From: Amoebophrya sp. A120
Taxonomy: Eukaryota; Protista; Dinoflagellata
DNA: 64,000 nt
Assembly: GCA_905178155.1 (NCBI GenBank)
Contig: CAJINV010000005.1
Coordinates: forward strand, 3,585,968-3,649,967
Direction of reading: 5' to 3'
Under the pieces are notes generated by a model, which worked only from the letters and a program-made list of their open reading frames with translations, did not search any database and was not told the origin of the DNA. The position numbers were made by a program, and so were the translations under genes. This document shows positions 3,901 to 18,102 of the stretch, piece by piece (position 1 is the stretch's first letter; the number at the start of each line of letters is the position of its first letter).

Positions 3901-6900
3901 CAGGACTAGTTTTTTTTCGGTTCTTTACGTTTCTCATCAGGTCTTTTCCTTTTTGCGCCAATCTTTCCGCGCGCGATGGTTTTTTGTCCTCCCTGCTCAT
4001 ATTTTTTTTCTCAGCCGAGTGGTCGTCGTCTCCTTTGGAGGTCTGATGATCGTTTGAAGGGTGCTTTTCAGGATGATGCTTCTGAAGATCTTCGAAGTTA
4101 GGATGTTTTTGGTCATGGGGATGATGATCATCATCATGATGACCATCAACCTCAAGAGGGGGTGATGATTTTTCATGTCCTCCATCATGATGAGCGGGTT
4201 GATGATGATGCTTGTGTTGCTGCTGTAGAGCATGTGCATGTCGCTGGGTTCTGGAGACTTCCAGCAGTGTTTTGTCGGTCGCGTCGTGGATCGCGTTGGA
4301 CGGCGCAGCCTCTGGCAGCTGCTCTGGCGCGACCTGTGCCATGCAAAAGTATCGGAATCGGAATAGTAGTACAATGTGCATGTTGATGACAAATGATCGT
4401 CGGAAGAACAAAAACGCAACTTTGCATCATGCCAGTTAAGGTACTAGAAAGCTCGGCTCGTCGTGGTCATGCATGTTGACTGCAACTACTACAAGTACGA
4501 TGCTTGTTGTTTTCCAGATGATACGGCCTCTTCATCCACAACTAGAGTAGCAGCTTGTTGCACCCCTGGCCGCGCAGCCCCCGGACCATGATCTTGCACT
4601 TCTGCCACTGCCACTGCGCCTTCATCTGGTTGGGCATAATTTTCCACGCCTGTAGAGGACATCGCGCCGCTCCCGGTGGCTCTCGTAGACGTAGTCACTC
4701 CAGATCTACTTCTAGAAGTTGCTTCTGTATCATGGTTGTTGCGACCCGGACTCTCCACCTCGCCGTTCTCGTCATCCTCAAGGACTTTTGTCGTCGCCGC
4801 TGAAGAAGAGGACGGAGATGTTCTTCTTGCCCGTGCGAGGACCTTCTCCACAGCAATAGAAGTAGAACAACCATCGGCCGCCCCGAGATTAGCATCCTCT
4901 ACCTTTTCGGAGTTGTCGGACGAAGAGTCTACTTCTTCAGCATCCTCACTGGAGTTGTAGTCGGGCGAAGAATCTACTTCGTCGCGCGACCATTCAGGCT
5001 TTCGCACTACACTGTAATCTTCGCGGTTGACCCCGACTGAGTCGAACTTTTTCGGGTCCAGCTTATCCCTCAACCAGGGCCACAGTTCGTAGCCATAAAC
5101 CATCTGTTTGTTCGCATTCTGTCCGTAGTCGTGCGACACTTTGTACGCGGTTCCCGGTGCCACGTGTGGTCGATCTTCGCTCGTTGACGTTGTTGAACCC
5201 ACAAGGCTCTCAGTGTCGTCGTCGTCCTCCTCCTCGTCGTTGATGTCATCTTCTACTTCAGAGTTCGACGAAAGGTGAAGGTCCTCATCTAGTACTCTCG
5301 CATGCTGTTCTTGTTGTTGTTCTTGTCGTTCTTGTAGAGGACCTGATGCACCACCTCCACTCCTCAACGTGGTCTTCACTCGAAGCTTTTCTAGCATGCT
5401 GCTCACGTCGATCGCCTGCACCTCCGTAGCGTGGCCGATCACCTCTATACCAACGCGGTTCCGAAGGTCTTGGAGCAGCTCTCCCTGGACCGCTCGGGTC
5501 GCGGCGCGCTCGCCTTGCAGCAGTTTCCGTTTCGTCGCGTGACCCATGTAGTCGTGCACGTCCTCCACCTCCTCGTTTCTCCCGAACTGCGAAAAAAAAT
5601 TGGCGGAGGACGACGCCCCTTCTTGTTCTTCTTGTTCCGTGCAGTCTTCAGTGTAGTCTAGTGCTGTTGATGATGCTCTAGTACTTCCCTTCTCGCACAA
5701 CTTGTCTAGCTTTTTCTCTTCCTTCGCCAGCTGCAGGCCAAGCTTGTGTAGCGCCTCTTCGTCGTCGTTGTCGTCCCGCCCGAAGATGGTATCTCGAACC
5801 GATTCCGTTAGCACGTCCAAAACCTGTGTGTCCATGAACTCCTCCATGATTTCGTGCAGCTGTTCGCCTTTCTCGAAAACTTCCACAAAAATGGTCTCTA
5901 AGTTCTGGACCACAAGCGCCAGCTCCTTGTTGTTTTTATCATCCAGGGCCTTGCCAAGCAGTTCCTTCGCGCCGAGTTGGAGCAGATCGGAGAAAAACTT
6001 CGCTGCTGACGCGGAGACGCCTGTTTTGAAGTGCAGCACCGTCTCGTGTCCGGTGATGAGGCGGATCGCTTGTTTGCAACGTCCATCACCCCATACAGGC
6101 TGTGGGAGAGTTTGTCTTTCAGTGTGTGCTTGATGTAGTGCCACATGTCAGTGAAGGATGTTTTTGTCGTCCACGAAAACGTGTCGCCAAACCATTTTTT
6201 TGCATCCTGCGAGATGTGGCCCGTGGCGTGGACGGGCGCTTTGACGGTCTCAGGCGGGGAAAGCTTTGGCCCAACAAGAAGTCGATGGTAGAATTTTTGG
6301 TGCTGGAGCTGCAAGTCCAGTAGGGACGAAGACGAGGCCGATGATGTCGTCAGCATTCTTGTCGAATTGTCAACCAAAGTCGCAAGAAACGAAGCGGGGG
6401 AGTTCGAGTTGTAAGTGGTCTCACGTAGTGGTAGATCTTCCATGCTGCTCGTTATCGCATGTCGCCGCGGAACCAAATCAAAATGAGTCACTTTCTTTTG
6501 ATGTCCCGTAGAGTGTTGCTCTAGCATCTTCATCACCGCACTAGAAGGCGAGGGTCCTTCAATAGTGTGGCTAAAAACTACGTCATCTACTCTACTACTT
6601 TCATCAGCGTTGACAGACGTAGACGATGAAGCTGCTATGCTTGTAGCCCTTGCGCCCGACGAGGAGGACTTGTTTTCCTCTAGCTCGTGTGTATTTTTAA
6701 GGTAAACTGTTGCTGTCGCTGTGGTTGTAGTTCCTCCATTGCTACCTGATCTTGACGGGTCGCTGTGGTTGCTGTTGCTCTCCTCCAGCATCGTGGTCCC
6801 CAGAGAAACTTCTTGCGCACCATCGTGTCCAAGAACTACCGAAGCCGCTGATAGACGCCACGTTTGCTCGTCGCTGGCTGCTGCTTGTGTATGATGTTCA

Positions 6901-7232
6901 TTTTGCAGCTGTAGCTGTAGGTGAGGCTGCTGGGGCTGCTCCTGTGAACCGACATGCTGCTGCTCAACATCGTTAATGCCCAGGCCGTCATCGGTAGCAG
7001 AGACGTTGTGGCTGCCAGAAAAGTCATGATTTCCATGTCGACGTCCAATTGCAGCAGAGATGGCAGGGGAGGATGTAGTTTTTAGGGCGAAATAAAAATG
7101 AAGAAGCCGGTGAGGTGACGCCGCTTGCCCACGACCTGCGACGAAAAGAAGAACAGACCCGGTCAGCGACCACTTCCAAAGCGAAGTACTTCTGGTCCTT
7201 CTGCTCATCTTGTTGGAACCGTATTGCGACAT
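954..7232 (-). CDS. Large putative secreted low-complexity protein (His/Lys/Asp/Ser-rich), multi-exon, with an apparent frameshift near 6070
   Basis: ORFs 5898-7232 (hydrophobic N-terminus WSLTGSVLLFVAGRGQA), 4489-6144 and 1850-4411. The last two join in frame across element 4335-4523 (EEA|APEQL). The 3' end is uncertain because of element 1030-2008. Confidence 0.6.
969..2066. repeat. 58-bp direct repeat pair (969-1026 and 2009-2066) flanking the large TIR element
   Basis: tcctgcctgatgatctgatgacgccgcggcggatgaagatgaagatgaagaacgagga is identical at both positions. Confidence 0.9.
1030..2008. mobile_element. Large (979 bp) non-autonomous TIR element with about 60-bp imperfect TIRs and GC-rich internal repeats
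   Basis: Left end tatggggtcgtcaacgttatatttgcctcagaccgtaaaaaaaattctgcgcgc versus reverse complement of right end gatggcgtcgtcaaacttgtatttgcctcaagcagtaaaaaattttccgcgcgc. Internal ggaacccctctggg and ccggtacacgcgcgc repeats at about 1470-1655. Confidence 0.75.
4335..4523. mobile_element. Introner-like TIR element (older; GT-AG splicing also possible)
   Basis: Left end tgtgccatgcaaaagtatcg, right end ...cagatgata. TSD CGACC/CGGCC. In-frame join of ORFs 4489-6144 and 1850-4411. Confidence 0.75.
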
Positions 7233-8632
7233 GCGCCTGGAGCGGCGCTACCAGTGAGGACGCAGGCCACTGCGAGGAGCGGCTGATGGTGCGTGGAAGT
7301 CGTAGTAGCGGTGCCCCATACGTCGACTCGTCGCGGGCGAGAAGTCTGTACTTATGCTTGGTTGTTTCGTAAATAAATTTTCGGTGTGCACACGCACAGG
7401 AAGGCCGAGTAGCGTGATCCCGAAAGTAAATGAAACTATCTCTCTAGCACGAGTGGCATCTTCTACATATTAAGTTCCTGGTCTACGAACGAATTTTTTT
7501 TCCCGAAAACGTCTAGAGGACAAAAACCGCTCTTGATGTCCCGCCCAGGACATCATTGAAAAGCAGACCCCCGTTTTCGTTTGCAACAGAAAATGCGACT
7601 AAATGAGGCATGTTATTTATCAACCTGCTATCCCCTTCTTTTTGTTTTACTTTCAGCTCTTTGAGCGAATACAACGATATTTTCGTACGCTGTCCGACGT
7701 GCAGCCTGCAGCTGCCGGCCCACCCCCTTTTTCCTTGATGTGGCATTTTTTGCGAGCTGCACGACAAGTTGGGAGAGCCTTCTTTTCATTCCCGTTGTAC
7801 TAGTATAGTCCGACCAGCAACGAGAACGAATATGACCCTGTGGGTCGTTGGAGAAATACGATTACGAATAGGCATCAGAAGCGGGACGAGGCCTGAGTAC
7901 CAGAACCTGCCTCGACGAGCAGTAGCAAATGCGACCTGGAACAAGCATAATTGCGGTGATGATCTTCATCGCTACGATGTAAAAAGCCCCTGCAATCAAT
8001 GAGTAAACAGAAAAGTAGTAGTATCTATCCGACGCACGAAAGCTGCCATGTACAACGTCGATTGATTACCGACCAGCGTCGACGATTTTGATTATACGAG
8101 TAGAATATCCTATCGTCTTCGACGGGCATACTTATCAATATGATCTTCTCGACCGAGAACGGATGAGCGGACACACCACGAAGACCCAAGACCACGGATG
8201 GAGATAGAAGTTCCTTGTCCAGCACATGGGACGAAGCACTTACAGAAATCAGCATGTTGGTACGTCCTGCAACAGAAAATCGAGACCGATCATAGCATAA
8301 GTCCTTGTCGAGTTTCAAGTTCGACGCACTGGTGCGTTTTTTTTTTAGTTTTGCATTTGCACTGTTAAGCAAGTCACGCGTATAAATTCTGATTTTTATT
8401 GTTTGGGTGCGCTTCAGTCCTGATAGATTTGCTGCGAAGGAATGGTAAGGTTTTGATACTTTTTTTTTCTGAGCCAGTGGCAGTACCAGTGTTGCTTTTG
8501 AATTTGTTGATGTCCATTTGAGAATTCACACATGGATATGCCTATGGAGGTGCTGCACCCTGACCATACGGCAAATTCAACCACTGGTGGCTGCCGGCAC
8601 TGCCACTGCTACTGTTTCCTTCAGTAGCACCA

Positions 8633-8757
8633 TTTCGTTTCGTTCCTTCCATGTGGTATCCCTAAACCCGAGCGGCCCGTTGGACCGCGCCGTTGGGGCT
8701 GGGTAAAGCGTCCTGGGCCTACCTCCCAAAACCGAGGCCCAGCACGCCTCACCACCA
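8633..8757 (-). repeat. Split direct repeat B2 (125 bp)
   Basis: Identical to 9004-9128. Confidence 0.95.
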
Positions 8758-8812
8758 AACGTCTGTCCGGACGAACCGGCACGACGTATACGGCCACTCG
8801 GGTGGGGGGGTG

Positions 8813-9003
8813 GGGCAAAAATTCACCTAAACCTACGTCCCCCAGACGCACATATCGATGACTCTACATCGCTCCTCCCCACTCTAGGGGAGGAGATCGC
8901 AAACGTGCAATAGCTTCTACGGATCTGCCAGCCGATATAGTGCGAACGGGGGACCCCAAATCCCAGTTACTACACGAAAAGGATCTACCGAGGTAGATAT
9001 GTC
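8813..9003 (-). repeat. Split direct repeat A2 (191 bp)
   Basis: Identical to 15774-15964. Contains hairpins ctcctcccc/ggggaggag and atctac-cgag-gtagat. Confidence 0.95.
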
Positions 9004-9128
9004 TTTCGTTTCGTTCCTTCCATGTGGTATCCCTAAACCCGAGCGGCCCGTTGGACCGCGCCGTTGGGGCTGGGTAAAGCGTCCTGGGCCTACCTCCCAA
9101 AACCGAGGCCCAGCACGCCTCACCACCA
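9004..9128 (-). repeat. Split direct repeat B1 (125 bp), abutting A2
   Basis: Identical to 8633-8757. The B1|A2 junction reproduces a circular-junction-like join of the element ends. Confidence 0.95.
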
Positions 9129-9501
9129 CCTTGCCAAACAGGGCAAGACCCCTCAGAACCCCACAGCAGGTGGTTGAATGAGGGGAGACCCAGCCCCGCC
9201 CCAATTGCCCTCGGCAAGGCCCTACGCCGAAGTGGAACAAACGAAATCCCAAAGCGAGGGACAAGTAGACACGGGAAGAAACCCAAACAAAACCGCCAGT
9301 GGTAGAAGTGGGAACACTGTTTTCTGAGTGGGATCACATGACAAGCCTGGGCCCGCGAAGCAGTAAATCGCATACCCAAAGGTGGAAAATGTATTTGAAG
9401 AAGAGACGTCATACCGTCCAGAAACATCTGCACACTGAGTCCACAGGCGGATCTCAAAACAAAAGGGTACAGGGCAAGCGCAAAAAACATCGCGGAGTGG
9501 C

Positions 9502-11832
9502 TCAAACTTGAGCCAGCAACTCCTCAGCCGGAATAGAATCCAGCAGCTCACAAGGATCTTCAAGCGGGGTCGCCACCGTGGTCAGGAACCTCTGAATCTC
9601 ATCCCCCAAAGCGACACAGGAATGAAGCTGCACCCTAGCCACCCGACAGAACTGCGCCCAAAGTGCATCGCGGGTAGTCGCGTCAGCAACATTTTCCCCG
9701 GAGGGGAGCCACTCGAAGTACGGCACTATGGCAAAACGGGCACACAAACTCCAAAATAAAGCCGCTACCACCGACAGGTGAGCGCGCTCGCCCGATCGAC
9801 TCCGCAAAACCCCCACCGCAGTGGTGTTGTCCAGAAAGAATACGACCCGCTTGTGCGACAAGGTCGGGCCCCAGAGCATCAACAGAATGACCGGTGTAAA
9901 ACTCTCCAACACGTTGATCGGGAAAGACCCCCAAGAGGCGGATGGAAAATTATCCGCCCGCGAGACCGGGTGGCGGAACGCCTGGAAGGCACCCTCCTGC
10001 AGAAGACGGACCCCGCCGAGAATACCTCGCCCCCGCTTCCAACTCGCGTCCGAGTAGCACACCTCCACCGGGAGGCCCACTCGTAAGAAGGAAATCGGAG
10101 GAAGGACCGGGAGGCAGGCCGCCATGAAGCGTAAGCTCGCCGCACAACCGGAACCCAAGGGAAGGCAGGTGGCGCGAGAATGAAACAAACCTCCACGCCG
10201 AAAGACCGGCTTCAGCAAGCCATTTAGACGCCGGCCCACCAGCAGTGAGAAGGGGAAAAGGAACTTCCCGGAAAGGGTGGAAGCCCGCGCGGGACTGAGC
10301 TCCCCCGCCCCCAAGACTTCAACCAGGGCCGCCCGAAGGGTGGCGCGCTTCACTTCCGACAACTGCATCGTGGGAGGCGATTGCGACACGTCAAAATCCA
10401 AGCCCAAAACCCGCAAAGCGGTGCGCCCCCACTTGACCTTCTTCGGCTTCCAAGGAAAACCCAAAACCTCCAACATGTACACAATGGCGCGCATCAGGAG
10501 ACGGCGAACCCTGCGGGGCGCCGTGCCGGTCATATCATCTATATAGATGATCAAGGCCACGCAGAAAAGCCACCGAACGCAGAAGGCCAGAAACTGCCCA
10601 ACAATCAACCACTCCGTAACGGAGTGAATGTTCCCAAACAGGAGCGTGAGGCCGCGGAAGGCTTTGTAGGCCTTCGCCTTGGGGTCGAAAACCCCGATCC
10701 AGTTCGTCGCGCTCCCCGCCTTCGAAATGCTTACATTCTTGTAAGCGTTGGCAATGTCGATAACCCACTGGCAGAGCCCCGCACCCTCAGGGTCCGCACC
10801 ATCCTCCGCTGCGTCGAAGTTCGGTATGTGGTCCAAAGCCGCCCAAGCAACCTCCCGCCAGCCCGGGTCGGACGGGCGGGCATCCGGGAAAGGATCAAAA
10901 TCATACTCTTCACAGGCCAGGGGGTCTGCCCGGTTGCCCCCTTGGTCAAACACCCGCAAATCCCGCCAGAAGTCAACCCGCGGCGGGCCGCCTTCTTCTA
11001 GTAAAATCGCCGAGCTCGAAGCAAGGGCGAGAGCATGATGAACCGACGGAATCGGCATCGACGACGAGATGTCGGAGCAAACATTCAAAGGCACACCATT
11101 GTCGCAGAGGCGGATCTTGTCCGCCTCATGGTGTGCAAAACGAGTCAGAAGGATGCGCGCCCCCTTTTCCCAAGCTTCGTCCAGGGTAAAAGGACCCTGG
11201 AGCCAGCCGTCCTCGGTTTCTTGGATTGTAGTATCCCAGCAGTGCTTGACATCTTCACCCGGCATCCACGATGAGCTGCGCTGCCGCAGGCGCGAAATAT
11301 TTTCCGCACCCTCAACCGAGGCTGCTAGGTCCCCCGAACCGGAGCCGGTAGTTGGGGCCGGGGGCAAACGTCCACCCTCCGACGCCTTCATGAGTTTCGA
11401 CGGCCAAAAGTCTTGAGCCGCAGTGGGGCCGACCGATTCCCCCCCGGAAGCTAAAACCCGCCATACATGCGAGAAACCCGAAAAAGCAGACTCTCTGCCA
11501 ATCTTCTCAATAACCCCGAAGTTGAACTTCGACCGGATTGGCCTGGTATCCTTCCAACCACCTGCCAAGACCTGCTCCGAGCGAGAGACGGTCGCTGGGT
11601 CCGCCCGGGCACAGGCCAGCCAGTAAACGCCCGCCAGAATCCGGTCCGAGAAATCCCCAAAGGACGAGCTGTGGCCTTCGCGCAGGCACTGTTCGTTGTG
11701 CCGCGAGATCAGTCGCCGACCCGAAAAGGCCGGGTGGCTCCTGTCCTGCGACAAACCTGGTAGAAACCTGTCCCGGTCCCGCTGGACCCGAGAGAGAAAG
11801 GCAGAAACCTTGTCAGCCGGCGAGGACTCCAT
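9502..11832 (-). CDS. Reverse transcriptase / RNase H (DIRS-type)
   Basis: RT motifs KIRLCDN, DIANAY, LLFG, YIDD, VLG. RNase H motifs YSDAS, INVLE, LDN, WLPSGENVAD. Confidence 0.93.
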   Translation of the reverse strand: MESSPADKVSAFLSRVQRDRDRFLPGLSQDRSHPAFSGRRLISRHNEQCLREGHSSSFGDFSDRILAGVYWLACARADPATVSRSEQVLAGGWKDTRPIRSKFNFGVIEKIGRESAFSGFSHVWRVLASGGESVGPTAAQDFWPSKLMKASEGGRLPPAPTTGSGSGDLAASVEGAENISRLRQRSSSWMPGEDVKHCWDTTIQETEDGWLQGPFTLDEAWEKGARILLTRFAHHEADKIRLCDNGVPLNVCSDISSSMPIPSVHHALALASSSAILLEEGGPPRVDFWRDLRVFDQGGNRADPLACEEYDFDPFPDARPSDPGWREVAWAALDHIPNFDAAEDGADPEGAGLCQWVIDIANAYKNVSISKAGSATNWIGVFDPKAKAYKAFRGLTLLFGNIHSVTEWLIVGQFLAFCVRWLFCVALIIYIDDMTGTAPRRVRRLLMRAIVYMLEVLGFPWKPKKVKWGRTALRVLGLDFDVSQSPPTMQLSEVKRATLRAALVEVLGAGELSPARASTLSGKFLFPFSLLVGRRLNGLLKPVFRRGGLFHSRATCLPLGSGCAASLRFMAACLPVLPPISFLRVGLPVEVCYSDASWKRGRGILGGVRLLQEGAFQAFRHPVSRADNFPSASWGSFPINVLESFTPVILLMLWGPTLSHKRVVFFLDNTTAVGVLRSRSGERAHLSVVAALFWSLCARFAIVPYFEWLPSGENVADATTRDALWAQFCRVARVQLHSCVALGDEIQRFLTTVATPLEDPCELLDSIPAEELLAQV

Positions 11833-12671
11833 TCTGATGCTGCACTACGCTGGCGAGCGCGACTCTGTGAAACGGAAGTAAAATTCTCCCTCAAAGGAAA
11901 AAGGCGAAACCGTCGCTCGCGACGGTTCCACAGTAGAGTGTGGGGGGTGGGCCCAGATAGCACCCACACCCTGTGGTGTAAGCGACAAGAGAAAAACCAC
12001 CAGAATGTGAAAAACAAGAAAAGCGAGTGTACTAAGTAGCCAACCTGGGCGCGGTCTCGTGTCAGCACGGGAACTGAGGGGTGAGAAGAGCATGAGCATA
12101 ACGATCACAAAGTACCGCGCCGCCAAGGAGGTGAGTTTGCAAGGGTAACGGATTGGTTACCGCCAGTGCCAAACAACCCTCATCCCCGTGGCAACACGAG
12201 ACCGACCGCTGAGCATGTCTATGCTACACAATGAAAGACAACCCACGGGGGGTGAAGAGCCACTCTCCTCTCGACCGAAGGTTAACAGCTCACAAACACC
12301 TCGTGAGCACAACTACCACTCCGATCTCGGAATCTAACCGGCATCTACACCTAATCAACAGAGACGGAATGCAGGGAGCAATGTAGACCGAGGGCAACAA
12401 AGGGAACACCCCGCGAGCCTGGCCACGCCAGACCGCGAAATAAGTACCAGGCCAAGGGGGCCCGGAACGTTTCTAATTTCCACTCACAACAATCACACTC
12501 ACATCTTGTTCTCACAACAGAGCAAAGCTTTCGCTAGGAGCTAAAATCCAAGAGCAACCAGGCCAGCATGGATTTGTTCATGTAGGAGTAGTAAAAAGCA
12601 ACACGCCGACGGACCCACTTGGCCGAAGGCGAGGGCCAACCTCTAAAACTAAACTGCACATGCTGCAGTGC

Positions 12672-13814
12672 CTACTTCGGAGGCGCTTGCGCGTCCCCTC
12701 TCAAATCTTTTATCACAAAGGGAGACCGCAACACGTGCGGGAATCTGCAGCTGCTTCCGCGATTACAGCGGCCACGAAGAAAGTCGTGGCAAACAATCCC
12801 CACGTTGGAAGTAGTAGCCAAAATTTCTTCACCTCTCACCGGATCCCAGACCTTAGGGATTCCGGAGGAAGAAGCACGCCCGGGCGGGGCAGGACCCGGA
12901 CCCGGGGGACGTGGAGCGAGTTGTTTAGGCGGTGCCGGGATCTGTAAAGAGCGAATCTGCCCAACGACACGGGCCCCGAAGCCCTGTGTGCCCCCGCGCA
13001 CTTCGCCGTTCAGGATATCGCGGTACTGAGCCGGATCCAGCCGGCGCGACTCCCCCAGGGCAGTCAAATCATGAAACTCCGCCTCTGAAACCAGGTCGGA
13101 GTTCCGGAGCACTTTATGTGTGTTGCGAATCAGCATAACGTTAGTGGTAGGCGACCCCTTTTCGGCTTTGTAGTAGGACGCCAGATCCTCGAGCGGCAAC
13201 CTAGCATCAATCTTCGCTCGTACCCCGTAAGCCTGTTCAGTGAAATGGTCTGCAAAGAAAATCCCGAAGCGAGTCGTCTGCGCGGTTCTATGTTTAGGCG
13301 CGGACGACAAAATCATCTTCACTTCGGCCCGCTCCGAAGCATTGAGGGCCTTGATGCCCTTAAGCGCCTTGATCTCCACGCTACTGCAGATGTGGAGCGA
13401 CCTAACACCGTTGTAGTCCAGCACAGCTCGTGCCAGGCTCTCCGCGGGCACATCTACCGAGGACAGCGAATCAAGTGGGGAAGGCTCCCGCTGGTGCGCT
13501 AATAATTCGGATCGCGAGATCCCAAAGGCCTCGACCTCACTGTCACTAAAATCTTGCACGGCCTTCCGCTTCTTCACCGGGGGCGGGCCCTTGCGGGCCG
13601 GACCCGCCTCGCCCTCTTCCTCCGCGAGAAGAGCAGCGCAAATCTCATCTTCTTCAACTTCGGGGGCCGCCATCGGCGGGGCTTTCACTTTCGCAAACGG
13701 TTTAGCGACCGCCTTAACCGCTTTCGCCTTGTGGGGCGGCGCCTTCCCCTTGGGCTTGGCCGGAGCTTTAGCTTTGGCCGGGTGCTTCGCCTTTGCTTTT
13801 GCTTTCGCGGGCAT
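12672..13814 (-). CDS. Gag-like protein with Lys/Ala/Pro-rich N-terminus and C-terminal CCCH zinc finger
   Basis: MPAKAKAKAKHPAKAKAP...; CHDFLRGRCNRGSSCRFPH (C-x7-C-x5-C-x3-H); located inside the retroelement. Confidence 0.75.
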   Translation of the reverse strand: MPAKAKAKAKHPAKAKAPAKPKGKAPPHKAKAVKAVAKPFAKVKAPPMAAPEVEEDEICAALLAEEEGEAGPARKGPPPVKKRKAVQDFSDSEVEAFGISRSELLAHQREPSPLDSLSSVDVPAESLARAVLDYNGVRSLHICSSVEIKALKGIKALNASERAEVKMILSSAPKHRTAQTTRFGIFFADHFTEQAYGVRAKIDARLPLEDLASYYKAEKGSPTTNVMLIRNTHKVLRNSDLVSEAEFHDLTALGESRRLDPAQYRDILNGEVRGGTQGFGARVVGQIRSLQIPAPPKQLAPRPPGPGPAPPGRASSSGIPKVWDPVRGEEILATTSNVGIVCHDFLRGRCNRGSSCRFPHVLRSPFVIKDLRGDAQAPPK

Positions 13815-14300
13815 CTTGTATCTGAACCTAAAAGCGATGCTCAATGTGAGTGTGAATGTGAACTAAGTGGCAAGATACACTTGCTCGTATCTAACGTGGT
13901 CCCCTGTACGTGGAAAATAAGCGAGAAGAAACCGGTCTGAACCCAAAGTGGGAGGGGGGGGGAGGGCCCAGATCCCATTTACAAGCAGCGTCTCCTGCTG
14001 CGATCAAAGATTTTCCCATACCGACCTAAACATACTCAACCACTCGCATTTCGTATCTGTCAAGAAAAATCGGGCTAGCCCTGGGCTCAAGATCTGACAG
14101 ATTTTAGATTTGGGACCAACAAATTTATGTAGCAACAATTTCCGAGCGACTCGTGCACGAAATAGAACAGACCGCCACTGGACAAAAGTGAAGCAAATAT
14201 ATTTCTGCGCTATGCGGACTCTGGTTTTTTAGAAAACGATTTGGAAGTTTCCAGCTGTGCAGTGCCTGTAGCTCGAGCTGAAACATAATGCACCAGGCGT

Positions 14301-15203
14301 TCACTCCAGGTCGTCCTCCTCCGGAGACCAGCAGCATAGAAGCTGCTGCTCCTGGTCAGAGAATCGCGCAAAGTCATCACTGTATTCGAAAAAGGACAGG
14401 CTCCTAGCCTGAAGAGACCAGCCCTGCCTATTGGAGACCACCGCCACAAGCTTTTGCCGAGCTTTGGCGGCTTTCTTCCTATTCCATGCTAAGCGCGACG
14501 TGATCGCACACGTACGACGTGGCCCATGGCCACTCGTCTCGGCTAGCCTACAGGCAGACATGAACTCGCACTTCGATATCGGAAACAACGTGGCCCAGTT
14601 CTCAACTGAGCACACCGGGCAAACATTCACCCGGCTCTTCTTACACATGCAGAGCACCTCCATGCGGCGTAGCTGCGAGGTTTTGTCCTTGCGGACCATC
14701 AAAGCTGCTGACCGGGTCACACCTCCCTGCCTACGCAGGAAGACCTGCGAGCGGCTAATCGCCGTCAGGGTGTCGCCACGGATCCCTAGCGCCGAGGCCA
14801 CTACTAAAATTTCTTTCTCCCGCTGTGTCATACGGCCCAGGGAAGCCAAAAAGATGGGCGTTGCCTTCTTCGGTTGAAGGTTCTGCGATTTCAAGTACCG
14901 GCCGATTGCCCGCTGCAGACCGAGGAGCTGCCGGGGGAATAAAATGTTTTTAATTCTTCCCGCCTCCCCTTCTAGCGTCACTGCTGAAGACAGGTAACCC
15001 GCCGCAGAGGTAAACCCCTGGGCCAAAAGAAAAGCGGCAAACTGTCGAAAATCCGCAATCCCAACTTCCCGGGCCTGCTCCAGGCCTTTCTGCACTTTGA
15101 ACGCCTGCCATGCTCTTGCGTGAGAAGATTGCGGAGAACGTGTCCCGAAGACACTGGGCGCTGGCCCTCTAAATGAATACGTATGCGGGCGGCCCCGAGC
15201 CAT
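14301..15203 (-). CDS. Tyrosine recombinase
   Basis: Catalytic pattern GIR(R), KDKT(K), CPV, GHGPRR (H-x-x-R), GW and C-terminal Tyr (FFEY). The ORF track extends to a GTG at 15248. Confidence 0.85.
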   Translation of the reverse strand: MARGRPHTYSFRGPAPSVFGTRSPQSSHARAWQAFKVQKGLEQAREVGIADFRQFAAFLLAQGFTSAAGYLSSAVTLEGEAGRIKNILFPRQLLGLQRAIGRYLKSQNLQPKKATPIFLASLGRMTQREKEILVVASALGIRGDTLTAISRSQVFLRRQGGVTRSAALMVRKDKTSQLRRMEVLCMCKKSRVNVCPVCSVENWATLFPISKCEFMSACRLAETSGHGPRRTCAITSRLAWNRKKAAKARQKLVAVVSNRQGWSLQARSLSFFEYSDDFARFSDQEQQLLCCWSPEEDDLE

Positions 15204-15773
15204 GTTTGCAATCAAAGTTGTGATAGACAAGGTAAGACAAATCCACACATCGCCCTAACGGCACCTACTGAGACTTAGATCTGGAAAGGAACGGACCACT
15301 ATCTGCCCTCAAAAGCACTACAGCAGCCTGGTAGTAGAAGAGAAAGAGAGAAAGGTTGACTTGGCGCGGGGCCTCAGAAGCGACCTAGCTACCCGAGCCC
15401 TACATCTAACATTCCGCACACTGTCGGATCCAATTTCCGATCTAACACTCTGAGCGCGTATCCTTTGTTTTTGAAGACCTTCCTTCATTTGAGCAAAAAT
15501 AAACAGAGCCTCAAGCTCTTCAAAGACAAGTACTCACCTGCCGCGCAGTTGAAGCATGAGTATCAGAAAACTTCCATGTCTCTACGAAGACATGGATTGA
15601 AAAAGAAATCGTAGCAACCTGCTGTGGCCTTGCTGGCCCTAACTCACAATGGCTTTCGCGCCCACGCTAAACTGCCCCCGCTGGGGCCACCCTCTATGGT
15701 GAGAAAAAAGGAATAAACTCCCCCCGCTGGGGGATGCCCTCACTGGCGCCACCTACTTCGGTGTAGAACAAAA

Positions 15774-15964
15774 GGGCAAAAATTCACCTAAACCTACGTC
15801 CCCCAGACGCACATATCGATGACTCTACATCGCTCCTCCCCACTCTAGGGGAGGAGATCGCAAACGTGCAATAGCTTCTACGGATCTGCCAGCCGATATA
15901 GTGCGAACGGGGGACCCCAAATCCCAGTTACTACACGAAAAGGATCTACCGAGGTAGATATGTC
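15774..15964 (-). repeat. Split direct repeat A1 (5' terminus of element)
   Basis: Identical to 8813-9003. Confidence 0.95.
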
Positions 15965-16496
15965 GATATTATTACAGCCGGCACCCCCGCCACTAGTGGC
16001 AGTTGCGCATCTAGTGTTCCGTTGTCCCCGCGACGAAGACCGAGAGCGTCTCCCAGTGCCACGGGCAGTTCGGGGAATGTTATGTCAGGTTGTAGTTCTA
16101 CTGGCAAAATATTAGAGTCGTGGCGCCCACCTTCTAAGTAGTTGCCCGCAAGGCCCGCACGACGGCCGAAATATGTTGGGTCGAACGCGGGCAGGTGCTC
16201 CGGGGAGGACGCGGCACTTGAACAAGCTGAAGAGGTGAGCGCGTTCGCCGACGTTGCTCTGGACAGGAGGGGTGACGCCTGGGTGCTCGCGGTGGCAGAA
16301 GTGGTTGTGCAGGCGGCGTCGGCGAAACGAAAATGTGGTCCTCCATATTTCCTCTGAGTGCAGGGCACAATGCGGATCGGCGACCCGGATGGAACTCCGG
16401 GCCTCCCCTGGCACGGATGCAACAGCATGCGCAACCGCAACTTCCACCAGCGCGCCGCGCTTTGCCAGTCCACGCTGGTGATCAATGAGAGCAAAG

Positions 16497-16818
16497 TATC
16501 CTGTGTAAAACCACCCGCCCAGACTTGTCAACGTGATGCAGGTCTGCTCAAATGTTTGGCATGCGCAGTCCCAACTACCCATGAGGAACAACATTCAGTA
16601 ATGCACATTTCTTGGGAGTTTGAGTCATTTGTCACTCGCTCGAATAGCGACTAGATGTAAAAGTGACTACTTGTCCGGCTGCCGCGTGGCTATACAGTAT
16701 GACACTGGGAGCCCCCGATTTTCTCATGTGCAAATTATACAGCCAAAACTTGTTGATTTGTGTAGCAGATTTTCCATTTTTACTCTGGCCGGGTGGGCGG
16801 AATGCTTTTACTCTGATA
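16497..16818. mobile_element. Introner-like TIR element
   Basis: Termini tatcctgtgtaaaa...ttttactctgata. TSD CAAAG/CAGAG. Left end resembles that of 39805-40083. Confidence 0.7.
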
Positions 16819-16989
16819 CAGAGAAGAGAAAAAAGCCACTCTCGTGAACCACATCGCTGTATTGCGGGCGTGTTGCGGGTTATGCATTGCAAAACTATCG
16901 CACTGCTAGAACTACTAGCATAGTTGGTTTTCTTTACCAGAAAGAAGAATGAAATTTGTGATGCACGTTCAGGCACAAGAGCGGATTTA

Positions 16990-18102
16990 TCATGCCGGAC
17001 TTCTGCGGCTTTTACCTTTACGAGCGCGGTACTTTTGCAGAGCATACGGATCGCGGAGAAAGAGTTCGGTGGTTGCGATCAGGGAGGAGTTGGTCGTCGC
17101 TCTTGTAGCAGGAGTACAGCATCTACTGCTGCCCCCAGCAAGAACAGCTGATGTACTAGTTACATTTGCATTCATTCTCCCACAACTCAGCTCGCACCAC
17201 TGCGCAAACCATTCCACCAGTGCGAGAAGTAAACAGGCACAGGTTTTCAGCCCTTTTTTCGACCGCAGAAATCCCCCTAAGCGGCTGCGGACCCACAGTT
17301 TGTGCAGTAGTTTCTCCCGCCGGGTTGGGCAAGTGAATTTTCTGTGTAGATTTCTGCAGGTGCTGCTAAGGATTCTCTTTGACTGCTCGCAGGCGACGAA
17401 GGTTTCGAGGGTGTCAACGTGGAAGAAATCTTGGTCCAGGACGTGGCGGGCCGTCGAAGATCTGGTTGGATGCAGGTCCGTGTGATCGACTTCCTTTGTC
17501 CTGCTAATTGTTACGCTGCAAGCTTGATCAGATGGTACGTCATGATTTTCGAGATCAAAGTGCAAGTCCGCCTGTTCCTCCCGTGCGTTCATCCTGGTGC
17601 TTTGTGCAGCTACAGAGCAGCTGCTCCGGCACTTATTTTGTAGGCAAGCCAAAGCAACACCCCGTGGTCTTGGTGATGGCGAGCTGCTACGCGGCCGTTC
17701 ACGGAGCGGCGATGGATTTACCACGTAAGCGACAGCTTCACCTTTAATTCTTGCGCGCGCGCTAGAGGCACTGGTTGTAGCATTTTCCGCGGACGACGCA
17801 CAAGCGTCAGACTTTTTTCGGGCAAAAATTGCCGCCGCCGAAACTGCAAGACTGGTAGTTGTCCTCGGAACAATCGTAAAAGCGGTCGGGTCCGCGACTG
17901 CGAGCAGGCAACAAGTGCGCCATATTACCGCTCGAGAAATGGACTGCAAAGTAGGTGTTCGCATATTTGGATTTGCAGCTGATGTACGTGAAAATAAAAC
18001 TCGCATCAACCGAGAGCGAGAGTGAGCTGCGCCTGAAAACGAAAAATTAACCAATGGAGGAAATAGATGACTAGGACAGGAGAGCGTATGCGCATTGATC
18101 AA
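16990..18102 (-). CDS. Hypothetical protein (uncertain)
   Basis: 370-codon ORF on the coding strand; no motif recognised. Confidence 0.3.
   Translation of the reverse strand: MINAHTLSCPSHLFPPLVNFSFSGAAHSRSRLMRVLFSRTSAANPNMRTPTLQSISRAVIWRTCCLLAVADPTAFTIVPRTTTSLAVSAAAIFARKKSDACASSAENATTSASSARARIKGEAVAYVVNPSPLRERPRSSSPSPRPRGVALACLQNKCRSSCSVAAQSTRMNAREEQADLHFDLENHDVPSDQACSVTISRTKEVDHTDLHPTRSSTARHVLDQDFFHVDTLETFVACEQSKRILSSTCRNLHRKFTCPTRREKLLHKLWVRSRLGGFLRSKKGLKTCACLLLALVEWFAQWCELSCGRMNANVTSTSAVLAGGSSRCCTPATRATTNSSLIATTELFLRDPYALQKYRARKGKSRRSPA

Follow-up and report, generated by a model that had tools for sequence, protein, structure and literature searches.

An element of 7,332 bp on the minus strand of the window (positions 8633-15964; the window is the whole stretch of 64,000 nucleotides of Amoebophrya sp. 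A120 DNA that was analyzed) is very probably an autonomous and recently active tyrosine recombinase (YR) retrotransposon of the DIRS order. It is of a split-direct-repeat, methyltransferase-less, Ngaro/VIPER-like type, and would move by the circle cycle described below. The assignment to the DIRS order is based on the protein domains, the repeats and the absence of a target-site duplication (TSD). With its recombinase-first gene order, the element represents a new layout within a kind of element that is already known. YR retrotransposons are rare and still little understood; to our knowledge none has been described for Amoebophrya. The Amoebophrya genome paper reports mostly unclassified repeats, and mentions neither DIRS elements nor recombinases.

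Repeats and open reading frames of the element

The element consists, in its own 5' to 3' direction, of a repeat A1, three intact ORFs, a repeat B1, a second copy of A (A2), a unique spacer of 55 nt and a second copy of B (B2). Its features, all on the minus strand of the window, are as follows.

15774..15964, minus: A1, 5' terminal repeat of 191 nt, 100% identical to A2; starts GACATATC
15249..15773, minus: 5' leader with two copies of a 19-nt CCCCAGCGGGGG hairpin-like motif and, immediately before ORF1, a polypyrimidine-CAG site
14301..15248, minus: ORF1, predicted tyrosine recombinase, 315 codons, first ATG at 15203
13845..14300, minus: spacer 1, 456 nt, with a 31-nt ATCTGGGCCC-polyC motif
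12672..13844, minus: ORF2, CCCH-finger protein, 390 codons, first ATG at 13814
11833..12671, minus: spacer 2, 839 nt, with a polypyrimidine-CAG site
9502..11832, minus: ORF3, predicted reverse transcriptase/RNase H (RT/RH), 776 aa, ATG start
9129..9501, minus: 3' untranslated region upstream of B1; its final ~82 nt are conserved jointly with B in related families
9004..9128, minus: B1, internal repeat of 125 nt, ends ...GAAACGAAA; short-form copies stop exactly at its end
8813..9003, minus: A2, internal copy of A, 100% identical to A1
8758..8812, minus: 55-nt unique segment between A2 and B2, kept jointly with B2 in relatives (matches to element positions 7144-7332)
8633..8757, minus: B2, 3' terminal repeat of 125 nt, 100% identical to B1

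The left boundary of the element was set by comparing four different flanks. The initial annotation described identical split direct repeats in the arrangement A(191)...B(125)-A-B. This description is correct at 100% identity for both repeat pairs, with the refinement that A2 and B2 are not contiguous but split by 55 nt of unique sequence. This segment resembles neither the sequence that follows A1 nor that which precedes B1, and the repeat analysis of the element gives no inverted terminal repeats. The B1/A2 boundary would be the image of the circle junction. The 7.3-kb unit is far beyond chance and recurs at 100% identity elsewhere in the A120 genome; element positions 6755-6961 also have many matches of 72-79% elsewhere in the genome.

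Three long intact, non-overlapping ORFs separated by 0.45-0.85 kb had been annotated, and the lengths of the two spacers agree with this range. The ORF scan of the element gives no further long ORF on the sense strand, and the interval of ~525 nt between A1 and ORF1 contains none. A fourth ORF (9505-8864), which runs through the repeats, was considered as a gene, but is broken in a sister copy and in relatives and was therefore treated as non-coding.

The polypyrimidine-CAG site of spacer 1 is located ~90 nt upstream of the ORF2 ATG, and the 31-nt motif occurs again in spacer 2, ~100 nt upstream of the ORF3 ATG. Each of the three separate ORFs probably has its own processed mRNA, and our guess is that these mRNAs would be produced by cis-splicing or by trans-splicing of a spliced leader at the CAG site that precedes the ORF. 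The 5' leader contains a donor-like site, CAG/GTGAGT, at element position 425; retrovirus-like splicing from this donor is unsupported, because the site becomes TC or TA in two diverged relatives. Three raw RNA-seq runs give zero reads on the stretch and are uninformative as an expression test, and one run, of which the RNA nature is merely guessed, gives patchy contigs mostly over ORF1. A loose read-contig end at 13903 was considered as a splice joint, but matches a repeat beside a rearranged copy on contig C4 and is therefore not a splice.

Proteins encoded by the element

Neither Pfam nor a direct PDB sequence search gives a match when ORF1 and ORF3 are used as single proteins, and their identities were resolved only through family alignments and folds. 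When a profile of the ORF1 family is compared with the PDB, it matches XerA (3.5e-8), a XerC-like protein (5.9e-4) and XerD (3.9e-3). The AlphaFold model of ORF1 has a pLDDT of 89, and its top Foldseek matches are all Cre, followed by lambda Int and XerH. The candidate catalytic residues are R157, K189, H241, R244, W277 and Y289, which are conserved in the family as R-K-HxxR-W-Y. By profile and predicted fold, ORF1 is a Cre-like tyrosine recombinase with two domains. The 343 homologues found for it are nearly all unnamed and come from Amoebophrya and marine metagenomes.

ORF3 is composed of an N-terminal helical domain (~residues 1-130) followed by RT and RNase H. Pfam gives no match for ORF3 of this copy, and weak RVT_1 and RT_RNaseH matches for its relatives. 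The AlphaFold model (pLDDT 75, pTM 0.75) has as its top Foldseek matches only RTs, namely those of MMLV (9e-10), CaMV, HIV and Ty3 (probability 1.00), and the fold also matches the RTs of Caulimoviridae and Retroviridae. The RT residues are D359 and Y430-I-D432-D433, and the RNase H residues are D595, E643, D668 and D717; the YxDD and D-E-D-D columns are invariant in the alignment of 19 ORF3 family members. These matches show ORF3 to be a very divergent RT/RNase H of the LTR-retrotransposon type. Open frames of this type, 770-880 aa in length, are kept across a large divergent family. ORF3 contains no methyltransferase, protease or DDE integrase; it ends ~40 residues past the RNase H fold, and this end is without a Pfam methyltransferase match. 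A DNMT domain is likewise not matched by Pfam in any ORF of the element. The earlier identification of the element as a tyrosine-recombinase retrotransposon is in agreement with these assignments of ORF1 and ORF3. Both enzymes are missed by standard domain models, and elements of this type are therefore left without annotation in the genomes of alveolates and in marine metagenomes.

ORF2 has an N-terminus rich in Lys and Ala and a conserved central domain, followed by a linker rich in Pro and, at the C-terminus, a CCCH zinc finger. The finger, which the initial annotation had noticed, is real: its zf-CCCH Pfam score is 23.8 bits against a cut-off of 20.5, and its motif is C-x7-C-x5-C-x3-H. The term gag-like, which had been applied to ORF2, is retained here only for its position and its putative nucleic-acid-binding finger; a retroviral-type Gag would have a capsid fold, a CCHC knuckle or both, and the Pfam search of ORF2 gives only the CCCH finger. 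In Amoebophrya AT5.2, ORF2 has a homologue with 40% identity. When ORF2 and the N-terminus of ORF3 were used in the Atlas search, only unnamed protist clusters and no family were obtained.

Copies, insertion sites and mode of movement

The A120 genome contains at least six copies of the element. They differ by 0-4 bases and their ORFs are all open, as expected from the annotation of the element as intact and young. Four copies are placed; they lie on three contigs, and their unique flanks differ from copy to copy. The small contigs C112 and C130, both unplaced, consist of element sequence only, which shows that the repeat was difficult to assemble. A TSD is absent at all four complete insertions, as had been claimed. 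Two of these insertions (L003 and L004) end exactly at B1 and are without A2-55-B2. The complete insertions are thus divided equally between a short form (A-internal-B, 6,961 bp) and a long form (A-internal-B-A-55-B, 7,332 bp), and 3' fragments matching the ends of both forms are also present in the genome. Each of the seven independent 5' junctions is preceded by TA(A/T)N, with TA at -4/-3; TAAT is found in four of the seven flanks, while its background frequency is 0.0014. The B repeat ends in AAA, and the flanking sequence reads AAT or AAA. The exact shared ends and the TA(A/T)N target point to integration of a circle at the B/A junction.

In the cycle that we propose, a full-length RNA would span A1 to B2, and the RT/RNase H of ORF3, the catalytic motifs of which are intact, would turn this RNA into cDNA. 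The B1/A2 junction would provide the sequence to close the cDNA circle, as in the standard split-repeat model. The ORF1 recombinase would cross the B/A junction of this circle (...GAAA/GACA...) with an AT-rich genomic site, TA(A/T)N/, and insertion without a TSD would result from this crossing. A circle with both B/A junctions could be resolved or integrated in two ways, which would account for the insertions being half short and half long. Homologous recombination of B1 with B2 in an integrated copy could equally well produce the short form. The identical young copies show the recombination site directly, through the long and short forms, the exact B/A ends and the TA(A/T)N target, and provide natural-history evidence for the circle-integration model, for which we know of little experimental support.

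The long form may instead represent a full A-internal-B element inserted in tandem beside a prior A-55-B mini-element of 371 bp, at the site that the recombinase itself uses. Both forms occur, a diverged solo A-55-B match (C4:7811249-7811642, 69% identity) is present in the genome, and the recombinase target would take in the left edge of any resident A. Nevertheless, this origin is very unlikely, because the structure is the same, and the tail nearly identical, in two long-form copies at unrelated sites, and because the diverged relatives L011 (84%) and L020 (72%) share the B-A-x-B tail, which fits a structure inherited as in Ngaro, PAT and VIPER.

It is also quite improbable that the element moves mainly as DNA, with the recombinase cutting a circle of the 6,961-bp A-internal-B unit out of the long form, or out of attL/attR-like ends, and reinserting it in the manner of a Crypton, and with the RT/RNase H as cargo or a secondary route. 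The short-form insertions are the exact product expected from a circle cut at B/A, and A120 contains two RT-less, repeat-bounded units with intact YR genes, one with the A..BA.B layout (L061) and the other with YR and ORF2 between 53-nt repeats (L063). However, these units may merely be non-autonomous derivatives. The RT/RNase H ORF is intact with all catalytic residues and is kept across the divergent family, the presence of at least six near-identical copies points to amplification by copy-and-paste, and the split-repeat layout is a hallmark of RNA-templated circle formation. A further idea, which we regard as rather unlikely, is that the YR elements of the Syndiniales are a living bridge that links Crypton-like DNA transposons to YR retrotransposons. 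The YR, with or without the CCCH protein, would then move as an excised DNA circle and, when accompanied by RT/RNase H, through RNA, and the short-form insertions would come from DNA circles made by the recombinase and not from reverse transcription.

Gene order and relation to known elements

The gene order YR, ORF2, RT/RH is identical in every A120 copy, so that the order given in the initial annotation is genuine. It can be obtained by cyclic permutation from the Ngaro/PAT order (gag, RT/RH, YR), so that the repeat junction of the A120 element sits between RT/RH and YR rather than after YR. For an element with a circular stage, such a rotation is only a small step. A metagenome scan with a single protein yielded one useful contig of 2.8 kb, and a marine metagenome relative (contig L064) has a YR gene followed downstream by an ORF2 homologue. 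Genes g7792 and g7794 of Amoebophrya AT5.2 encode homologues of the YR and the RT. No YR gene is present within 1.2-1.5 kb downstream of RT/RH at ~19 divergent RT/RH loci. Locus L038 has no more than a truncated piece of an RT, next to low-complexity sequence.

It is practically inconceivable that a canonical gag-RT/RH-YR element acquired the YR-first order by being locally rearranged or misassembled. The only sign of assembly trouble is that of the two element-only contigs C112 and C130, and no other support for an artefact was found. Against it, the four placed copies, with 0-4 differences and different flanks, have the identical order, the ORFs are open in every copy, the YR-then-ORF2 order is repeated on the unrelated metagenome contig, and the ~19 divergent family members have no YR downstream of RT/RH. 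Misassembly and local rearrangement, which the initial annotation had itself raised, are thus excluded by multiple independent copies.

The statement that no YR-first family is known is not fully supported, because a shuffled order of YR and Pol has already been reported for the DIRS elements of Symbiodinium by de Mendoza et al. 2018 (PMC5890265). The literature on YR retroelements stresses that layout features of this sort change repeatedly (PMC4157794), and the rotated gene order of the A120 element is further evidence that YR elements are poorly classified by their layout.

Ngaro shares with the A120 element split direct repeats (A1...B1A2B2), a YR in place of an integrase, the lack of a methyltransferase, mostly non-overlapping ORFs, the absence of a TSD and the cyclic order gag-RT/RH-YR (PMC4157794, PMC3266345). 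Only the cyclic order agrees, however, because the linear order of Ngaro is gag, RT/RH, YR, whereas that of the A120 element starts with YR. The latter also has long spacers (0.46 and 0.84 kb), a CCCH finger in place of CCHC, and an RT and a YR too divergent for Pfam. SymbioDIRS, compared here by its description, likewise has a dinoflagellate host, A-coding-B-A-B repeats, an RT too divergent for Pfam seeds, a separate YR ORF and a variable YR/Pol order (PMC5890265). It differs in that SymbioDIRS-Dnmt3 has a DNMT3 domain in Pol, which the A120 element lacks, and in that a CCCH ORF between YR and Pol is not mentioned in its description (PMC5890265).

The kinetoplastid elements VIPER and TATE have A1 at the 5' end and B1-A2-B2 at the 3' end, three ORFs, no methyltransferase and a gag-like ORF identified mostly by position, as does the A120 element (PMC6681497). 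They differ in host and in gene order, gag-YR-RT/RH, which runs the opposite way around a circle and cannot be turned into that of A120 by rotation. Cryptons, which are YR-only DNA transposons, resemble the A120 element in their Cre-like recombinase, lack of a TSD and short AT-rich sites, and the YR genes of L061 and L063 are without RT as well. In contrast to Cryptons, the A120 element has an intact RT/RNase H and split repeats.

DIRS1 differs from the A120 element in having inverted terminal repeats, internal complementary regions and a methyltransferase, and PAT in having a methyltransferase domain. DIRS1-like elements and PAT share with it a YR and a Ty3-like RT/RNase H, and their circles integrate without a TSD at a 3-bp junction of the AAT/AAA type (PMC3266345). 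The AAA of the B end and the AAT or AAA of the flank in A120 echo this junction as it is described for DIRS1-like circles (PMC3266345).

Structure of the element and its genomic copies

The element at 8633-15964 (7,332 bp, minus strand) is a real, intact and recently active tyrosine recombinase (YR) retrotransposon of Amoebophrya sp. A120. A repeat search of 7500-17500 detects exactly two direct-repeat families, A and B, and no inverted repeats. The split direct repeats reported in the initial annotation are confirmed, and the spacers, which it had placed at 0.45-0.85 kb, are 456 and 839 nt long. All long ORFs of the element are located on the minus strand.

Features of the element, in element sense
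15774-15964, minus: A1, 191-nt A repeat, 100% identical to A2
525 nt, minus: leader between A1 and ORF1
15248-14301, minus: ORF1, YR
456 nt, minus: spacer between ORF1 and ORF2
13844-12672, minus: ORF2, CCCH-finger protein
839 nt, minus: spacer between ORF2 and ORF3
11832-9502, minus: ORF3, reverse transcriptase/RNase H (RT/RH)
373 nt, minus: tail from the ORF3 end to B1
9004-9128, minus: B1, 125-nt B repeat, 100% identical to B2; the 3' terminus is B1, A2, 55 unique nt, B2
8813-9003, minus: A2, 191-nt A repeat
8633-8757, minus: B2, 125-nt B repeat

The 55-nt segment between A2 and B2 shows no similarity to the rest of the element. ORF4 (9505-8864), which runs across the repeats, is rejected as a gene; a sister copy has this frame broken, and relatives have it spread over different frames.

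The A120 assembly (115,520,608 bases) was searched for copies of the element.

Copies of the element in the A120 assembly
Copy 1, window: full A...B-A-55-B
Copy 2, contig C1 at 7.29 Mb: full length, A...B-A-55-B, 4 differences
Copy 3, contig C1 at 11.5 Mb: short form (A-internal-B), 0 differences over 6,961 bp
Copy 4, contig C4 at 0.22 Mb: short form, 0 differences over 6,961 bp
Copies 5 and 6, two small contigs: element sequence alone

ORF1 is open in six copies and ORF3 in five, and with only 0-4 differences between copies the element is indeed intact and young, as had been proposed. The gene order is identical in all copies, each with YR, the CCCH protein and RT/RH as separate ORFs in that order, so that misassembly is excluded as its source. 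Termini fragments and relatives of 72-96% identity are spread across many contigs. One 77-79% related internal-deletion derivative, in which the ORF2 N-terminus is fused to the RT C-terminus and followed by a single B, is present twice on contig C14, 15.4 kb apart (G000:C14:1806155-1810439 and 1821536-1825820; loci L009, L010, L016 and L017); the flanks of both are identical, indicating segmental duplication. A rearranged, 87-99% related copy lies inside another tandem repeat (G000:C4:11339266-11352319 and contig C118), where an identical 20-nt 5' flank precedes two A copies 10 kb apart.

Encoded proteins and expression signals

Neither ORF1 nor ORF3 alone gives a Pfam match, and direct PDB sequence searches with both are blank. 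An alignment of ORF1 with three diverged paralogues keeps R157, K187-D-K189, H241-x-x-R244, G276-W277 and Y289; a YR paralogue on contig C15 is CAD7968382.1. When the profile built from this alignment is run with HMMER in a full scan of 1.84 billion representatives, 343 homologues are found. R157 is invariant in a 70-member alignment, and K189, R244, W277 and Y289 are conserved in at least 90%. The 70-member profile matches archaeal XerA (3.5e-8), a XerC-like protein (5.9e-4) and XerD (3.9e-3) in the PDB, with the Arg of box I as well as the HxxR motif inside the aligned region. The AlphaFold model of ORF1 (pLDDT 89) matches about twenty Cre structures best in Foldseek, followed by lambda integrase, XerH, Tn1549 Int, XerA and Flp. 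The conserved residues, profile matches and fold matches together identify ORF1 as a Cre-like tyrosine recombinase of two domains that has the residue set R-K-H-R-W-Y. A 709-aa metagenome homologue (P0091) shows a weak, sub-threshold ALOG-domain match (E 7e-5); the DNA-binding domain of recombinases of the DIRS1 type is the probable origin of ALOG domains.

ORF2 gives the sole Pfam match among ORF1-ORF3 (zf-CCCH, 23.8 bits against a cut-off of 20.5). Its N-terminus is rich in Lys and Ala, its central part is conserved, and a linker rich in Pro leads to a C-x7-C-x5-C-x3-H finger. ORF2 has homologues in Amoebophrya AT5.2 (40% identity) and one metagenome contig. The CCCH finger of the initial annotation stands, but 'gag-like' is a label by position.

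ORF3 has about 20 relatives in the same genome (open frames of 770-880 aa, 21-32% identity), and one relative in another Amoebophrya (53% identity). Residues D359, Y430-x-D432-D433, D595, E643, D668 and D717 are invariant or nearly so in a 19-sequence alignment; they correspond to motifs A and C of the RT and to the D-E-D-D residues of RNase H. RVT_1 and RT_RNaseH give sub-threshold matches in some relatives. The AlphaFold model from this alignment (pLDDT 75, pTM 0.75) matches only reverse transcriptases in Foldseek (MMLV at 9e-10, then CaMV, HIV, foamy virus and Ty3), and Caulimoviridae and Retroviridae in the viral library. ORF3 contains no methyltransferase domain, because the protein stops about 40 residues past the RNase H fold. 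Residues 1-130 (about 11832-11443, minus) form a confidently predicted helical domain that precedes the RT and is kept across the family; the nearest clusters in an Atlas search comprise unnamed diatom, Perkinsozoa and oomycete proteins.

Each of the three ORFs is preceded by a polypyrimidine tract that ends in CAG. A 31-nt motif at 11928-11958 and 13943-13973, which reads ATCTGGGCCC and then a C-rich run on the sense strand, is located about 100 nt upstream of the ORF3 and ORF2 starts. The cistrons may plausibly be processed one by one, with spliced-leader trans-splicing among the candidate routes; such trans-splicing is common in A120 (PMC7789003). A CAG|GTGAGT site in the leader is not kept in two relatives. 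Three raw RNA runs labelled with the species yield no aligned reads whatsoever and so carry no information on expression. One sequencing run of uncertain type gives low, patchy contigs on ORF1 and the leader. An apparent joint at 13903 is rejected as a splice; it corresponds to a repeat that adjoins a rearranged copy.

Ends, insertion forms and the B|A junction

Alignment of the four complete copies defines the ends as GACATATC... and ...GAAACGAAA. The flanks of these copies are unrelated and none has a target-site duplication (TSD), in agreement with the initial annotation. Two of the four (window and C1:7.29 Mb) are of the long form. In the other two (C1:11.5 Mb and C4:0.22 Mb), the B1 end directly abuts unique DNA, and the ends of the short form therefore fall at the internal B1|A2 boundary. 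Fragments with either type of 3' end occur elsewhere in the genome. These ends fit the outcome expected if recombination takes place at a circle's B|A junction, and the chief value of the element is this natural evidence for integration at that junction.

Positions -4/-3 are T-A in all seven independent 5' junctions, which read TAAT| in four and TAAA|, TATT| and TATC| in the rest. In the window, TAAT occurs at a background frequency of 0.0014; although the pattern was picked after inspection, its excess is overwhelming. B ends in AAA. For DIRS1-like elements, TSD-free recombination is reported between a 3-bp circular junction of the AAT/AAA type and a genomic trinucleotide identical to it (PMC3266345).

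By analogy, the element fits the standard model of YR elements with split repeats. An RNA would span from within A1 to within B2, RT/RNase H would make the cDNA, B1A2 would serve as the template that joins the cDNA ends into a circle, and YR would insert this circle at the junction. In the 7,332-bp circle the B|A junction would occur twice in identical form. Were the circle to integrate at B2|A1, the long form would result, and resolution between the two junctions would give the 6,961-bp short form and a 371-bp A-55-B product. Alternatively, these two products may arise by homologous recombination between B1 and B2, either ahead of integration or following it. One diverged solo A-55-B match is present in the genome. 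Integration at the other junction would be expected to give A-55-B-A-internal-B; this form, with its 5'-located junction, is not seen in this element's family.

Gene order and relation to described elements

The order YR, ORF2, RT/RH is obtained by rotating that of Ngaro/PAT (gag, RT/RH, YR), from which it differs in the opening point of the circle alone. It is not a rotation of gag, YR, RT/RH, the order of VIPER/TATE/DIRS1 (PMC6681497, PMC3266345). The initial annotation knew of no YR-first family. This is not fully supported: a shuffled order of YR and Pol is reported for Symbiodinium DIRS elements (de Mendoza et al. 2018, PMC5890265), so that a recombinase upstream of Pol is not without precedent among dinoflagellate YR elements. 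The Symbiodinium elements have an A-coding-B-A-B layout and an RT that is not alignable to Pfam seeds but, as compared by description, carry DNMT3. A same-strand YR-first layout is absent among those listed by Szitenberg et al. 2014 (PMC4157794), who show that inversion of the YR, translocation of repeats and loss of zinc fingers are homoplastic. In the A120 genome paper, the repeats reported are mostly unclassified, and neither DIRS nor recombinases are mentioned (PMC7789003). Likened to DIRS, Ngaro and VIPER by described features, the element is of a known kind with a new layout, in which the junction keeps its classical 3' position.

The gene order is conserved beyond this element's family. 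A marine metagenome contig encodes a 33%-identical YR and then an ORF2 homologue, and the diverged A120 unit L063, described below, has these two genes in that order too. The YR and RT homologues of Amoebophrya AT5.2 are genes g7792 and g7794, a numbering that is suggestive of the same order. At about 19 divergent RT loci, no YR is found within 1.2-1.5 kb downstream of RT/RH.

Three further YR loci were observed in the A120 assembly. A diverged unit (L063, G000:C13:2130000-2139999, 3947-6896) has YR (4239-5159), then a Lys-rich ORF2 homologue (5843-6589), and 53-nt direct repeats at both borders, with no RT inside the 10-kb locus. A 3.9-kb unit (L061, G000:C15:355000-364999, 4288-8149, minus) has A..B-A-B split repeats (A 158 nt, B 115 nt) and an intact YR ORF 47% identical to ORF1, without ORF2 or RT, and lies upstream of a UBA-domain host gene; this unit may represent a non-autonomous derivative or else a DNA element of the Crypton kind. 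A third YR paralogue (L062, G000:C28:50000-59999) lies within a 5,972-bp tandem unit, in which six occurrences of a 51-nt motif (core AATCTTCGTGAAATCGTCCTCTTCCCTTT) are spaced 1.2-1.8 kb apart, as though flagging gene boundaries.
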